Below, piece after piece: positions 7,080-38,120 of a stretch of 64,000 bases of DNA. The DNA is from Octopus bimaculoides. Taxonomy: Eukaryota. A program made the translations under genes and the position numbers. The notes under the pieces are model-generated. The model had not been told where the DNA came from, ran no database searches, and worked only from the letters and a program-made list of their open reading frames with translations. The stretch lies in assembly GCF_001194135.2 (NCBI RefSeq), contig NC_068996.1, positions 22,510,850 through 22,574,849 on the forward strand. The letters are read 5' to 3'. Position 1 is the stretch's first letter. Every line of letters begins with the position of its first letter.

Positions 7080-7280
7080 ATGCCAGTGCCACCTGACTGG
7101 CACCTGCTCCAGTGGCACGTAAAAAGCACCCACTACACTCTCGGAGTGGTTGGCATTAGGAAAAACATTTGGCTGTAGAAACCTTGCCCAATCAGATTGG
7201 AGCGGAGTGCAGCCTCCCAGTTTGCCAGTCTTCATCAAATTGTCCAACCCATGCCAGCATGGAAAGTGGATGTTAAACAA

Positions 7281-9469: not shown

Positions 9470-9490
9470 TTTTTTACTTTTCCTTGACAG

Positions 9491-9648
9491 CTCATGAAGA
9501 TGAGTTTCGGGATGATGACTTCAGAGCTCCACTGTACAAAAATGTCGAAATTAAAGGTATTACTATGCGAATGAAATGGTGTACCACATGTCAGTTTTAC
9601 AGGCCACCCAGGTGCTCTCATTGTAGTGTTTGTAATAATTGTATAGAG
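9491..9648 (+). CDS. ZDHHC8: Internal coding exon of a ZDHHC5/8-type palmitoyltransferase; N-terminal half of the DHHC cysteine-rich domain
   Basis: Acceptor ttccttgacAG|, donor GAG|gtaagt. Encodes (A)[52 protein letters not shown], matching the ZDHHC5/8 signature [32 protein letters not shown]. Starts phase 1, ends phase 0. Confidence 0.97.
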
Positions 9649-12159
9649 GTAAGTGCCTTGTATTAAAATTAGTAAATATCAAGCTTCTTTTTTAATAAAT
9701 TTTTACAATTTAAAATCTAACAAAAACAGTAATCAGCTTTCTTCCATATTATAAACTAGTTGCTTTGCAATACTAATTACTTTATATTAAGAACTATTTC
9801 CTAATTAGAATATCTTAGCTGACCATCAAAAGGAATAAATTAAATTAATGACAGATGATGAAAGTGGTAGTTGTATTATGGCTACAGTTTATTTGATGTG
9901 TTTATAGGATATAGACATGGGAATTCTTTAGAACTTTCAGGTTTGTAGGTTTTGTCCATCAAGAATTCTGACCTGTTTTTTAGTAAACCTGCATGTTCCT
10001 ATGAGAATATAATATATTCAGAGATATAGGCTGCTTTCTTTCAACCTAAAAGTTCATTCAAAATGATGTGACCTGACGTAGCTTGTCAAAACACTCAGCT
10101 TCAATCACCTGCATCTTGTTAGTCATAACAGGATTATCAATTGTAAAACATTGACTTCATGTTTTGTTTCAGCTAAGGATTCTCACATGAACTAAAAGGC
10201 ATTCAATTGAACTGACTTTGTGAAGTTACAGGGTTTAAACTAAATTCATTTTTTCATTGTGCAATAGATATGACCCTGTCTTTGTTTCTTGATGGTAAAT
10301 GAAGATTAATATTTTTATATTTCTCTTCTCTGATGGTAATCAATTACATAACTATTTTCTTAATATACGATTGAGAAAATTGATATGTACAGTAGCTTAA
10401 ATATTAAATAAACAATAATTCTGTAGTTTTGGACTAACCATAGTTCTTCCCAGTTATTATTATTAAACTATGATTATTCAAAGAATATATCTTGATGTAC
10501 TGAATGCATTCAAAAGAATATTAACTTAAAGAGCTTGCCTTATTTTCTGTGCATACCCATCATTCAATGCCAATACTTACAATCGAGACATAAATGTATA
10601 AGCTCTTTACATATTTAAATAAAAATATATTTTAAGGCTTGATATTTAATTCACATTTCATGATTTGTATAAATTGTGTAACCAATCCTATACACACACA
10701 CGCACATATTAGAGAGAGGGAGAAAGATGGATATATGCTTTTTTTTTTTGCCCTTTTGCTTTCTACCCATTTTCATTGAAATTTTCTTATGTATATTCTG
10801 TAAACGCTTGCATGTACGTACTTCCATGAGATTGTGCTGAGAAAGGATTGTAATCAACTCCATGGTTGATTTCAATAAGTAGGGAGGATACCTGGTTGTA
10901 AAACAATTCCTTTTACAAAATGCAAACACTTTTATTTGTAAAAACTATTCCATGCAAACCAGCTTGTTAAATGGAGTGGGGGAACCAATAATGAGATTGT
11001 GGATCATTCTAATATGAAAAACTGATGCTATGTGAATTGAAGCAAAGTCATAATATAATGCTTTTAGTGAAATTTTAATCTATAAAGTAAATCTTTTGTG
11101 TCTGGCACGTTAACCCATTGTTAAATATCTACATACATAATAAAAATGCTATAGTATGTCTACAAGATAAATATAGTCTCACTCTAAGCAGTTTGTTGCC
11201 ATTATACCTAACAAATATAGGGTATATAATTTGAGTGAGAAAGAGAAAGAGGCTAGGTTAATTGTTGCTCAAGTTTAATTCACTGTAAATAACAAAACTA
11301 TATGTTGCCTGGTAACAGCAAATCTTTGTTGGTATGGTTCTCTTATATTCCATTTTCAACTGGAAATATTTCTATTGCAATAGAAGAAAGAAATTTATTT
11401 TGAGATTAACTCTGACAGAAACATGAGTAAAAGAATAGATATAAAGGAAACTACATCCTGTGTATTGAAGACTAATGTCTTTATACTTTGTTAAAGATAT
11501 GTATATGAGTGATATAAGCTACCCTAGATATATCATGATTTTACTAATTAAGTGTATGTGAAATGAATTATGTGTGGAAAATATTTCTAAATAATCTTAT
11601 TATTACTATACATATGTCAGATATATAATTACAGTAACATATTGTGATATACCTACACAATTTCTTATAGTGCACTGGTCAGTAAATGTTTTCTGTTTTT
11701 AATGAATGATTTAATGACCTATTGTTGAGAAAGGCTATTGTGAAGGCTACTTGTAGCCTTCACAATTCCAGCCACTCCTCATTCTGTCTTTGGCTTTCTC
11801 TCTAGATGTCACTAGTTATTTTCAAGACATGCAATGTAAGAAGAATCAAAGTAAGCTATTATAATGCATTTCAAGCAAAGCATTAATTGAATTAGCTTTA
11901 CAATTGTTGGCTGTAGCAGGATTTCATTTCCCTCAAATATGTTGAAAAGCACAATGTAGTCTTTAGTCATTTTCTTTCATACACCCATACACTTCTAGTA
12001 TTTTGTAGAGATTTCTTACTTACATCATACATAAGCATTTTACAGCTTCTTATATATCATTATTCCAAATATGGAGAATGTTCATATTCTGAATTTTTCA
12101 GTCAAATATCATAGATTCAGACACTCAGATATTTTGTCTCTTATATACATCAGTGTGCA

Positions 12160-25590: not shown

Positions 25591-26049
25591 ATAATAGCCA
25601 CTCACTCATTCAGTTGATTAACAAAATTTTCTCTCATTAAAAGGATTCAGTGTTACTATCATTGCAGTGTTTTCACTTGACATATACTTTGTTTACTACT
25701 ATAAATTCCACTTCTCTAAACTTTCGATTGTATTCTTCCCATATCTGTAACTGAACATAGCACTCACTTTTCATTTCCCATACCTAAAACCCACAAGTAT
25801 TGCGGGTTTTTTTTTCTGGGCATTACTAACTAGCTTCCTATCAAACTCTAACCTTTAACTTTTGAACCTCAGTAAACCTTTTCATTTTCCATTTTTCTAA
25901 TCTGAAAGGCCTTTATGGGAGTGAAAGAACAAAACCGGTCTCTAGAGACAATAAACTCTATAAAATAGACTAACAATGATAATGTATTTGATAGATAAAC
26001 TCAATATTTCTCACCTACATTCTAACAAATATTTTCTTTTCTTTTCCAG

Positions 26050-26222
26050 ACATTTGATCATCATTGTCCTTGGGTGAATAACTGTATTGGCAGAAGAAAT
26101 TACAGATATTTCTTTCTTTTTTTGATTTCATTGACAATTCATAAAATAAGTATATTTTCTTTATGTTTATTATATGTATTAGATCATAAAAAAGAGTTAG
26201 CCCAAGCTGGAAGTATTGTTGC
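26050..26222 (+). CDS. ZDHHC8: ZDHHC5/8 exon containing the catalytic DHHC motif and TM3 (missing from the ORF track)
   Basis: Acceptor ttttcttttccAG|. Translates [57 protein letters not shown](A). Phase 0 start fits the previous exon; ends phase 2 at GC|GTATCCTTT. Confidence 0.97.
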
Positions 26223-26881
26223 GTATCCTTTTCTGGAAAAAATATTGCATTAATGAAAATTGTGCTTTTAATGTAACATAATGTATGTCTTTTGAATTTT
26301 GATATCTTGATTTTTAAAATAATTGCGCCACTAAAAGAGCTGATTTTAGGAGGAACTTGTGGATGTGAAAGACTGTTTCAAAAGAGTCCTGTTCAACCCA
26401 TGCCAGCATGGAAAAGCAATAGATGATAGCAACATTCTTAGCAGAAATAGAGCAAGCATTATTATCATAATCATTACTTTCTTCTTTGGTTTAACATAAA
26501 CTTTTTTTTCTTTGTATTGCTTAGGTAAGGCAGAGATATGCATGAAATTTTGTGATTTCATGCACAATGCACTGTCAAACCATACACCTACTATTTTTGT
26601 CATAAGAAAAAAGTATTATCAATAGTATATGCAAAAATTACCTGTTTCAGTGAATGTTTAATGTCGAGGTAGATGCACACTGAGAATTTCTGACAAATTT
26701 TGGAGGGTTTGTAGAAGCCATAAGCATTGTTCCTTCAAACTCAATAAATCTATAAATAAACCATATATACTTTCTCTCCAGTCCCTTTTTTAAAATTCAC
26801 AAATTTTACTCTTATATCAGCTGGTGTCTAATGTCCAGGCATTCTCTCAGTCCACCTCTTCTCCACTTTCTACATAACTTC

Positions 26882-26921
<40 letters not shown>

Positions 26922-27624
26922 NNNNNNNNNNNNNNNNNNNNNNNNNNNNNNNNNNNNNNNNNNNNNNNNNNNNNNNNNNNNNNNNNNNNNNNNNNNNNNN
27001 NNNNNNNNNNNNNNNNNNNNNNNNNNNNNNNNNNNNNNNNNNNNNNNNNNNNNNNNNNNNNNNNNNNNNNNNNNNNNNNNNNNNNNNNNNNNNNNNNNNN
27101 NNNNNNNNNNNNNNNNNNNNNNNNNNNNNNNNNNNNNNNNNNNNNNNNNNNNNNNNNNNNNNNNNNNNNNNNNNNNNNNNNNNNNNNNNNNNNNNNNNNN
27201 NNNNNNNNNNNNNNNNNNNNNNNNNNNNNNNNNNNNNNNNNNNNNNNNNNNNNNNNNNNNNNNNNNNNNNNNNNNNNNNNNNNNNNNNNNNNNNNNNNNN
27301 NNNNNNNNNNNNNNNNNNNNNNNNNNNNNNNNNNNNNNNNNNNNNNNNNNNNNNNNNNNNNNNNNNNNNNNNNNNNNNNNNNNNNNNNNNNNNNNNNNNN
27401 NNNNNNNNNNNNNNNNNNNNNNNNNNNNNNNNNNNNNNNNNNNNNNNNNNNNNNNNNNNNNNNNNNNNNNNNNNNNNNNNNNNNNNNNNNNNNNNNNNNN
27501 NNNNNNNNNNNNNNNNNNNNNNNNNNNNNNNNNNNNNNNNNNNNNNNNNNNNNNNNNNNNNNNNNNNNNNNNNNNNNNNNNNNNNNNNNNNNNNNNNNNN
27601 NNNNNNNNNNNNNNNNNNNNNNNN

Positions 27625-27655
<31 letters not shown>

Positions 27656-27949
27656 GAAGTTATGTAGAAAGTGGAAAAGAGGTGCACACACATACACAAG
27701 TGAGTGAATAAATGAAAGAAGGGCACTCAACACATTTATTGGGAGTTACATATATGGATCAAAACAGTTTGATTCAAATTCATTGGTACTTAAAGTTTCA
27801 AAGCATGATGCTTATCCTTAGTCACTGGAAATTTGAATTTTCCCAATGGCTGAGGATAAACATCACACTTTGAAACTTTGAGTACCAAGGAATTTTAATC
27901 AAACTGTTTTGATTCATTTATATATCTATATCTATATATATAATGTATA

Positions 27950-28125
27950 TATCATCATTTAATGTCCGTTTTCCATGGTGGCATGGTTTGAATGGTTTAA
28001 TAGGGTCTGGCTGCATGAAGCTCCAATATCAGCTTTGGCGTTTCTATTGCTGGATGCCCTTTCTAATGCCAACTACTTGCTTTTTCCATACCACTGGCAC
28101 TAGTGAGGTTGCCAAATAATTAGTA
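27950..28125 (-). mobile_element. Old element with RTE-like 3' tail
   Basis: atcatcatttaatgtccgttttccatgg..ggatgccctttctaatgccaac. Confidence 0.6.
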
Positions 28126-28363
28126 AGATGTGTGTATATATACACACACACTCACACACCTCTTGTCTCTTCATCCTCCACAGATTTTCCACACTCAGCA
28201 TACCATGTCTCATTACCATGTTGCATCACAATTCTTTAACTTAGTTCATAGGACATTTTATACACAAAAAAAAAGAGAAATTCTGTTACAAACTTCTACC
28301 TTTTCTTTACTCTAGCTACTATATAATAGTAACCGTTCATTAAAATTGTCTCATAGTAAACAG

Positions 28364-28377
28364 GTTACCATGGTAAC
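28364..28377. promoter_or_regulatory. Perfect palindromic RFX X-box motif (GTTACCATGGTAAC) inside the U12 intron
   Basis: Exact match to the GTNRCC-N(0-3)-RGYAAC consensus; function untested. Confidence 0.4.
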
Positions 28378-29475
28378 AGATTATGACCTCCCTTAATTAA
28401 GTGGGTGTCTATACTGCTAACTACATCTATTTACATTTGTTTCCTCGCCCAGCAAGAGATCCTACTCTAGCTTTTAGTGTACCTTTTGCTCATAAGGATA
28501 AGTTATAGTGAGTCTTTCTTTTATCCCATTTATAAATATCTATGAGGACCACTTCACAGTTAGTGAAATTTAATGTTTTCACTTTGTCTCTAGCAAACAT
28601 TTCTAGCTTTGGAAAATTTTCTGTAGATCCTTGGTAAATTACATTGAGAACCAGTTCATTGGTATATAAATAAGTGTTCAAAGACAGCATGTTCTTAACT
28701 CCTGTATTATTGCCCCATTCTCATTGTTTGTAGCCCATAATAGCTATGTTCATTCATAAAATCTCTAGAAAATACTGTAAACTAAATTCATGTCACTGAA
28801 ATTAATATTCGTTTTAGTTATAACCTGTAATCAGATTATAGTCAAAACAAACAATGAAATAGATTCTTAGATAACATTGTTATTTGTAAAAATATTTACA
28901 TTGATTCTTATATAACGTTTTTATTAGTAAAACTGTTTACACTGATGTTTGTTTGGCTGCTTATAGTGTGTCATTTCCTCATAACTGTTAACATTATCCA
29001 CAAAAAAAAAAAATGAAAATGAGTGTTCCAGAAGTTTTGAGCTTGACTGTAAAATAAAAATGAAATGTATTCTTTTGTTGCTGTTATGTGTTTTAAATTT
29101 GTTGTCAGGTTCAAAACTGTTGGAACATCTGTGTGTGTGTATTCAAAGCTAAGCTAAACAAAGATTTCATTTTAGTACCTAGCCTAATCCTAGATTAAAA
29201 TAATTCACCTGAAGACAAGTGAATTTAGCGTATCAAAATCTGTTTGCATTGATTGTAAAGAAAATATTTAACAATTAATTAAACATCAGTATTAACATTT
29301 CATATTAAAAACAATCATGAGTTATTATTTTCTTAAAATATTTCATGGATACTGTATAAAGTATGCTTTTAAGCTTACTTTTTTCCTTCCAAAAAATGCA
29401 CCTTGTGTACATATATGTGTGTGTGAATGTATATATACATATGTATGAAATTGATTTTTCCTTAACCACATTCAG

Positions 29476-29578
29476 TTTTATTGTAATGGTTATTATTGGT
29501 ATATTAATTATTCCGGTTGCTGGTCTTACTGGTTTCCATACAGTTCTGGTTGCTAGGGGAAGAACAACTAATGAGCAA
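29476..29578 (+). CDS. ZDHHC8: ZDHHC5/8 exon: TM4 and TTxE motif
   Basis: (A)[34 protein letters not shown], matching family [20 protein letters not shown]; donor CAA|gtaagt, phase 0. Confidence 0.97.
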
Positions 29579-29689
29579 GTAAGTGTTTTTTTTTTTGTAT
29601 TTTATTTGTTTTGACCTTTGTAATTTTTAAATTGGATGTTAACATTATTTTGCTCAGTGCTACACTCATCATTATCATTTAACATCCAT

Positions 29690-33289: not shown

Positions 33290-33381
33290 GTGACTGGAAA
33301 ATTTAGGGGTAGCCAAAATCCATTTACACGTGGTTGCTGTAAAAATTGCAAATATGCTCTTTGTGGTCCACAATGGCCAAG
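33290..33381 (+). CDS. ZDHHC8: ZDHHC5/8 exon: PaCCT-type region with C-terminal cysteines (missing from the ORF track)
   Basis: Acceptor tttttaacAG|. [30 protein letters not shown](R) matches family VTGKFRGG.NPFT.GCC.N....LC; donor AG|gtaata, phase 2. Confidence 0.96.
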
Positions 33382-37342: not shown

Positions 37343-37937
37343 ATTTTGCTGTGCAATTAAGAAGTGTTTAATAACAGTGTAAATGCTTACAAAAGAACAC
37401 TTTTATCATGTTTGTTGCATCTGCACAGATGTCATGATTGAGATAGAATAATTTTCTTCCACTTCATAAGTTGGTTTTAGATAAATTTAAAAGTGCTTGT
37501 TATGCCAGTTTTTTTTTTTCTTTTAATTTTTTTTTTTACTTAAAGACAAATTTACTTAGTGTTCTCATCTCAGTTTGTATACAGATAAAAATTCATAACA
37601 TCTTGTATATTTTATAGTACCTTTATAACTTCTAAAGTTTATGGAAAGTATTATTCTCTGATTACATTTAAATATTTAAGGTAACCTTATCAAATATTTA
37701 TGATTTAAAGATTATTCTGAATAAATATTTGATGATATTAGAAGATATAAGTTTTAAGAATATGTCAGAAGAAACTCTCACTTATACACACACACTGAGG
37801 AAAATCTATTTTAATACTGCATCTCCTGCAACTAGTCTATCATTTATGAATGCATGCAATAAAAGTGTCATCTTCGATATTTTTGAATGTTTTAGGAGTT
37901 CTTATATTTATCTATGTTATATTTGTCTATTTTTCAG

Positions 37938-38076
37938 GCTTGTTTCATATAAACCAAGAACAAAAACTGTCCAATTTGAATCCTCAAGAGTAACTTATGT
38001 TGCTGCTGATAAAGATGTTAAAATATTCATGGACAACAGTAATGGAATAAAACATGACAATACATCTAATCACAGG
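37938..38076 (+). CDS. ZDHHC8: ZDHHC5/8 exon: start of the cytoplasmic tail
   Basis: Acceptor ctatttttcAG|; one base completes AG+G = Arg; LVSYKPRTKTVQFESSRVTYVAADKDVKIFMDNSNGIKHDNTSNHR; donor AGG|gtaaaa, phase 0, matching the next exon. Confidence 0.85.
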
Positions 38077-38120
38077 GTAAAATTCATTTGAGATTTATCA
38101 ATTTATGTTTTGAATATATA

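Follow-up and report, generated by a model that had tools for sequence, protein, structure and literature searches.

The 64,000-nt stretch of Octopus bimaculoides DNA considered here (contig NC_068996.1, positions 22,510,850 to 22,574,849 of the forward strand; hereafter the window, with positions counted from its first letter) carries on its + strand part of the gene for a DHHC palmitoyltransferase of the ZDHHC5/8 family, and the subject of this analysis is the intron at 26223-29475, which is coding intron 4 of that gene. Judged by its sequence, this is very probably an intron of the U12-type GT-AG class, the class assigned to the minor spliceosome. The splice signals, the exon junction, the orthology of the intron and the continuity of the DNA across an assembly gap inside it are established by direct reading and alignment. 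An initial annotation had placed such an intron directly after the exon encoding the DHHC motif, and this assignment is upheld by exact consensus sites, by orthology over ten loci and by a listing of the gene in the literature. The exons of the gene and the signals of the intron are listed below, where P0121 denotes the NCBI protein 'probable palmitoyltransferase ZDHHC8 isoform X2 [Octopus vulgaris]' and the basis of each entry is given in brackets.

9490-9648, + strand: coding exon 3, whose translation starts with 11 residues not shown here and runs to CSVCNNCIE (tblastn with orthologues and P0121; sequence read)
26050-26222, + strand: DHHC catalytic exon, 173 nt, ending in phase 2 with C at position -1 (tblastn; sequence read)
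26223-29475, + strand: the whole predicted U12-type GT-AG intron, phase 2, 3,253 nt as assembled (sequence; comparison with O. vulgaris)
26223-26231, + strand: U12-type 5' splice site GTATCCTTT, an exact match to RTATCCTTT (sequence; the same in O. vulgaris)
29458-29466, + strand: U12-type branch-point sequence TTCCTTAAC, presumed branch A at 29465 (sequence; comparison of orthologues)
29473-29475, + strand: 3' splice site CAG (sequence)
29476-29578, + strand: downstream exon, whose initial T finishes the split Ala codon (tblastn; sequence read)
33290-33381, + strand: next coding exon, followed by a U2-type GTAATA donor (tblastn; sequence read)
about 37936-38088, + strand: last exon of P0121 mapped in the window (tblastn with P0121)

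The spliced product of the window is 100% identical over 175 aa to P0121 and matches the Pfam family PF01529 (DHHC) with E=1e-38 and 132.9 bits, against a cut-off of 28.7. All named relatives found in a protein search were ZDHHC5 or ZDHHC8: ZDHHC8 of Octopus vulgaris, ZDHHC5-like proteins of Limulus, Hypanus and Leptosomus, and a JGI entry named 'ZDHHC5/8'. P0121 contains four Kyte-Doolittle hydrophobic segments (residues 10-37, 41-63, 144-168 and 172-209) and has its DHHC motif at residue 127, so that the DHHC domain lies between the second and third segments, the arrangement by which DHHC S-acyltransferases are recognized. Mapping was carried out with this 297-aa isoform X2, of which exons 3 to 7, covering residues 72-297, are found in order on the + strand across five gaps, exons 1 and 2 being located further upstream, outside the window; the O. 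vulgaris gene covers about 88 kb. The catalytic exon is preceded by an acceptor ending TTTTCCAG and encodes TFDHHCPW...AQAGSIV followed by GC, two nucleotides of an Ala codon, and the exon at 29476-29578 carries the fourth hydrophobic segment together with the TTxE motif. Because the exon at 33290-33381 is also in place, gene order and strand are consistent past the U12-type intron. Ordinary U2 donors open the three remaining introns that fall within the window, namely GTAAGT at 9649 directly after coding exon 3, GTAAGT at 29579, and the GTAATA listed above. As had been remarked in the initial annotation, the catalytic exon is absent from the track of open reading frames (ORFs); its ORF, at 26074-26253, is 59 aa long, and with a cut-off of 60 aa it would just be missed, which accounts for the absence. 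The window has an A+T content of about 67% and contains thirteen runs of N (10 to 895 nt).

The donor, branch site and acceptor named for the intron beforehand are all present where they had been placed. Directly after the DHHC exon the intron opens with GTATCCTTTT (26223-26232). RTATCCTTT occurs once in the window, both strands considered, against 1.97 copies expected, and this single copy sits exactly on the exon boundary defined by homology. At the other end, the branch motif TTCCTTAAC is part of a longer match, TTTTTCCTTAAC at 29455-29466, its branch A lying 10 nt before the end of the intron; three copies of TTCCTTAAC are present in the window against 0.62 expected, one of them 10 nt from the acceptor. 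With a chance per position of about 1.5e-5 for the donor and about 6e-5 for the branch site, the occurrence of a consensus donor and a consensus branch site at homology-defined boundaries and with the right spacing is a joint placement far beyond chance. Only the 8-nt CACATTCA separates the branch motif from the AG, which leaves no room for a pyrimidine tract, in agreement with the earlier reading. The donor shares only GTA with the 9-nt U1 consensus CAG^GTAAGT (^ marks the splice junction here and below), and with C at position -1 it makes a very poor U1 site. The features by which GT-AG U12-type introns are recognized are accordingly all present: an RTATCCTT(T) donor, a TCCTTRAY branch site roughly 8-20 nt from the acceptor, and no extended polypyrimidine tract. 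The two motifs on which the program intronIC bases its score are at consensus, and a high score would be expected for this intron.

Joining of 26222 to 29476 brings GC and T together as an Ala codon and restores the frame (...SIVA^FIVMV...GRTTNEQ), again as first proposed, and unspliced read-through of the donor meets stop codons after 9 codons. In minor splicing the donor is paired by U11 and U6atac and the branch site by U12. At this intron U11, and later U6atac, would pair with GTATCCTTT at 26223; U12 would pair with TTCCTTAAC at 29458-29466, bulging the branch A 10 nt from the CAG acceptor; and ligation of 26222 to 29476 would complete the Ala codon between the third and fourth hydrophobic segments. 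Removal of the intron by the minor spliceosome is thus predicted from its signals, and any effect on splicing kinetics would likewise be a prediction. GT-AG U12-type introns are biased to non-zero phase and to a base other than G at position -1 (PMC7367187). Minor introns are present in Octopus sinensis, and molluscs show a relative enrichment in them (Larue and Roy 2023, PMC10639083). A gene for a minor small nuclear RNA was looked for in the whole 64-kb window, without an Rfam match at gathering thresholds.

The junction is annotated in the same form in O. vulgaris. The P0121 locus lies on chromosome OX597829.1 of that species (L013), where it contains no N and shows about 91% DNA identity to the window, and the NCBI model P0121 uses exactly the equivalent of 26222^29476 (SIVA^FIVMV). 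The O. vulgaris intron is contiguous and 3,040 nt long; it agrees with the window at every position of the first 63 nt and the last 42 nt, and elsewhere the two introns differ by 3-12% per 100-nt bin, while both U12 motifs are 100% conserved. The intron splits codon 182 of P0121, at the N-terminal edge of the fourth hydrophobic segment, and the position initially given for it (phase 2, between the third and fourth transmembrane segments) is therefore correct.

The 3,253 nt assembled in the window include 703 N of estimated length, and 2,550 nt were actually read. This gap (26922-27624) is wholly intronic, and the reading frame is therefore not at issue. Window positions 25819-26889 align to L013 77814-78872 and positions 27685-27952 to L013 78875-79127, so that the flanks of the gap (26889 and 27685) map to L013 78872 and 78875, 2 nt apart, with strand and order unchanged. 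The gap is bordered on each side by an arm of an inverted repeat:

26850-27687, no strand assigned: 33-nt arm and (TA)n, the gap at 26922-27624, then (TA)n and the inverted copy of the arm (inverted repeat I8; comparison with L013)

The arm is CACCTCTTCTCCACTTTCTACATAACTTCACAA, and I8 as detected comprises 63 nt with 97% complementarity. At the corresponding site in O. vulgaris the arm is present once, and ATATA(CA)n comes after it. The gap represents either a species-specific expansion of a TA palindrome or a fold-back artefact of the assembly, and the gene is unaffected either way.

To place the intron among animals, orthologous loci were compared at the same codon. In ten out of ten loci that carry an intron here with U12 signals, it lies in phase 2 after a C at position -1, begins with GTATCCT, and contains YYTTRAC with the A 8-13 nt from the AG:

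Window, Octopus sp.: intron 3,253 nt (703 N), branch CCTTAAC
L013, O. vulgaris: intron 3,040 nt, branch CCTTAAC
L016, Lottia gigantea: intron 206 nt, branch CCTTAAC
L014, Nematostella vectensis: intron 4,076 nt (1,173 N), branch CCTTAAC
L015, Trichoplax adhaerens: intron 89 nt, branch CTTTAAC
L006, mammal ZDHHC8-like contig: intron 216 nt, branch CCTTAAC
L009, mammal ZDHHC5-like contig: intron 139 nt, branch CCTTGAC
L005, fish-like contig: intron 78 nt, branch CCTTAAC
L003, invertebrate (insect-like) contig: intron 78 nt, branch TCTTAAC
L012, invertebrate contig: intron 1,720 nt, branch CCTTAAC

The same site and signals from Placozoa to vertebrates agree with the description of an ancient, conserved minor intron that had been offered for the octopus sequence. 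Both vertebrate paralogues carry U12 signals here, GTATCCTTTG...TCCTTGAC in the ZDHHC5-like contigs L009 and L011 and GTATCCTTGG...GCCTTAAC in the ZDHHC8-like contigs L006 and L007, and the comparison with ZDHHC5/8 homologues that the initial annotation had called for thus finds the phase-2 site shared by mammalian contigs of both kinds. Many of the proteins in the databases are prokaryote-style ORF calls on animal genomic contigs that read through the exon boundary, and these too record the donor. In an anchor-based count, 85 such clusters continue with Tyr-Pro after the split codon (xxG^TAT CCx), the next residue in most of them being one with a T-initial codon (F, L, S, W or Y); about ten further clusters end right there, which is what GTAA or GTGA donors would produce. 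In birds the ZDHHC5-like read-through ORFs have Tyr-Pro-Pro, equivalent to GTATCCxCC, which suggests a weakened donor.

The site has also changed in some lineages. No intron is present at it in C. briggsae, which has different introns nearby, and in the insect-like contig L018 the equivalent phase-2 position reads C^GTAAGTAT, a U2 conversion in which the C at -1 has been kept. Taken together, these comparisons indicate that the intron predates the divergence of placozoans, cnidarians and bilaterians, and that the known U12-type introns of human ZDHHC8 and Drosophila CG34449 are its orthologues.

The initial annotation had warned that gene predictors tend to mis-model this intron. In octopus the warning does not hold, as the NCBI model of O. 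vulgaris has this very junction, but it does for Trichoplax, where the JGI model P0221 reads four codons (YPFN) into the intron (…IAFPYPFNT…; L015 1429-1517). Proper splicing there would use GTATCCTTTT...TTCTTTAAC...CAG and give …IAFP^IACLSIS….

A group of arthropod-like proteins (P0041, P0044, P0051, P0063, P0066, P0086 and P0014/P0016; CIEIFDHHC…LTEV^) was observed to have no intron before the DHHC motif. Exon homology in this group breaks off at a Val codon (GTx), some 6-8 residues sooner than elsewhere, and this points to either an alternative micro-exon (HQDY…CCLYQV) or a U2-type intron at a shifted position in that lineage.

The intron of this gene has been described before. Intron 4 of 11 of CG32705/ZDHHC8, a GT-AG intron, was classified as U12 type in fly and human, while D. 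ananassae and Anopheles were reported to have it in a U2 form (Lin et al. 2010, PMC2831892), and CG34449, with human orthologue ZDHHC8, is among the fly genes with U12-type introns (Pessa et al. 2010, PMC2952598); the mention of ZDHHC8 homologues, CG34449 included, as U12 genes in the initial annotation is thereby confirmed. The octopus intron shares gene family, GT-AG subtype and U12 class with the introns of human ZDHHC8 and fly CG32705/CG34449, and is likewise the fourth coding intron. In the mammalian ZDHHC8-like contig L006 the intron interrupts the very same codon in phase 2, with C^GTATCCTTGG at the donor and GGCCTTAAC 8 nt from the AG. Apart from its cephalopod host, the octopus intron differs in being longer, about 3 kb compared with 216 nt in L006 and 78 nt in the insect-like L003. 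Compared with the GT-AG U12-type introns catalogued by intronIC/IAOD and in a pan-eukaryotic survey (PMC7367187, PMC10639083), it has the same consensus sites, short distance between branch site and acceptor, non-zero phase and non-G base at -1, and differs in nothing of substance. The orthologues converted to U2 type or lost (D. ananassae, Anopheles, L018, C. briggsae) concern the same gene and site, at which octopus retains the full U12 signals. The octopus feature is thus an already known conserved minor intron and not a novel one. A literature search returned no paper linking ZDHHC5 to U12-type introns or the minor spliceosome, and both the U12-type intron of the ZDHHC5 paralogue and the pre-bilaterian age of the intron may not yet have been described.

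Several points weigh against the assignment and have to be set beside the evidence for it. The annotated junction comes from O. vulgaris, a sister species about 91% identical in DNA, and not from the species of the window; the Logan, JGI and ENA contigs were given their clade names from protein similarity only; and the fly intron was matched by the intron number given in the literature. An intron that is real but spliced by the major, U2-type spliceosome at the same GT-AG or at nearby sites, its U12-like motifs being relics, would be compatible with conversions of this kind at the very same site, both in L018 and in D. ananassae and Anopheles (Lin et al., PMC2831892), and the T5CCTT run upstream of the acceptor could act as a short pyrimidine tract. 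We nevertheless regard this as very improbable. The donor fits the U1 consensus at GTA only and follows a C, and both U12 motifs are perfect and fully kept between the octopus species amid an intron that diverges by 3-12%; their conservation across phyla indicates that the motifs are in use. Nor does a neighbouring donor offer a way out: the nearest in-frame GT, at 26213 (GAA^GTATTG), was considered and rejected, as it is also weak and would delete three residues found in all orthologues. That the apparent intron is an artefact, in which the gap at 26922-27624 joins unrelated pieces or hides an exon, is hardly credible, even though 703 N with (TA)n flanks and an inverted 33-nt arm are typical of a mis-resolved palindrome or microsatellite. 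The flanks of the gap are collinear and only 2 nt apart in the gapless O. vulgaris chromosome, exons 3 to 7 follow each other on the + strand, and no residue is missing at the junction in comparison with contiguous orthologues and P0121.

With the U12-type assignment retained, a separate question is whether slow minor splicing limits the rate of ZDHHC5/8 expression as a regulated gate, in neurons for instance, or whether the intron simply persists by neutral processes. A gate would fit the persistence of the intron at a single position between Placozoa and mammals, with both vertebrate paralogues included, as well as the shift of CG34449 probes in a fly U6atac mutant (PMC2952598). However, the intron has been lost in C. 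briggsae and converted to U2 type in L018, D. ananassae and Anopheles without obvious consequence, a CG34449 mutant is listed as viable (PMC2952598), and a pan-eukaryotic survey credits neutral processes for much of minor-intron evolution (PMC10639083). A regulatory gate appears unlikely to us, and these observations call for caution.

The importance of the intron beyond correct annotation is small. Its delineation fixes the exon junction 26222^29476 for the gene, with the scaffold gap leaving the gene model intact, and it is a case of a minor intron recognizable from raw sequence alone. Furthermore, the ZDHHC5/8 U12-type intron provides a clean marker for studies of minor-intron loss and conversion, its history reaching back to Trichoplax and Nematostella, with C at -1 throughout, a loss in Caenorhabditis and a GTAAGT donor in at least one insect-like lineage. 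The Trichoplax model, for its part, is a concrete example of gene predictors mis-calling minor introns.

The initial annotation had stated that the intron tolerated growth to over 3 kb with a retroelement insertion. The length itself stands, with the 703 N of the gap being an estimate, but it is not remarkable, since none of the three other introns that the window contains of this gene (16.4, 3.7 and 4.6 kb) is as short as the U12-type intron with its 3.0-3.3 kb. Across species, the lengths of minor and major introns scale together (PMC10639083). What had been called a retroelement is two old, diverged copies of a short, dispersed, SINE-like (short interspersed element-like) repeat, the second of them being the element originally meant.

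26340-26480, - strand: SINE-like repeat copy, diverged and of approximate extent, core at 26392-26414 (core-motif search)
27939-28115, + strand: second SINE-like repeat copy, core at 27970-27992 (89.5% identity with O. vulgaris)

The repeat core TTTCCATGCTGGCATGGGTTGGA occurs 11 times in the 64-kb window against 0 expected (at 7243, 18895, 18972, 26392, 27970, 29690, 37117, 56477, 57765, 59344 and 61043), with two copies in the U12-type intron and one in the next intron. The copies found by BLAST are only 69-72% identical; a comparison of the intron with the window at E<=1e-6 recovered one of the two intron copies, and the core-motif search recovered both. Both are shared with O. vulgaris and are therefore older than the split of the two species. 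A tRNA-like SINE head was searched for over the whole window, with no Rfam match at gathering thresholds, and in overall character the intron copies look like old SINE copies.

The difference in intron length between the two octopus species stems from TA-rich microsatellites and not from transposons. O. vulgaris has a 686-nt (TA)n/(TATG)n block (L013 79128-79813) that is absent from the window, the counterpart point being at about 27950. A reading of this extra segment as a transposon with a target-site duplication was considered and rejected, because the block is an expanded (TA)n/(TATG)n microsatellite. We regard the SINE-like copies, the TA microsatellites and the gap as neutral content of the intron.

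A second U12-type intron, before the exon at 9490, was considered on account of TTCCTTGAC near the acceptor and was rejected. The sequence TTTTCCTTGAC at 9472-9489, which O. vulgaris has conserved, resembles a U12 branch site. The motif stops 2 nt short of the AG, too close to serve as one, a TACTAAC branch site is present about 30 nt upstream of it, and the donor of this intron in O. vulgaris is G^GTATGT, of U2 type; on these three grounds the intron is assigned to the U2 type.

Finally, a further inverted repeat, I7, was observed within the U12-type intron at 27744-27927. Its 88-nt arms are 84% complementary and enclose an 8-nt loop, resembling a near-perfect hairpin, and it could be a miniature inverted-repeat transposable element (MITE) or a fold-back element. 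The region aligns to O. vulgaris, and I7 is thus present in that species too.

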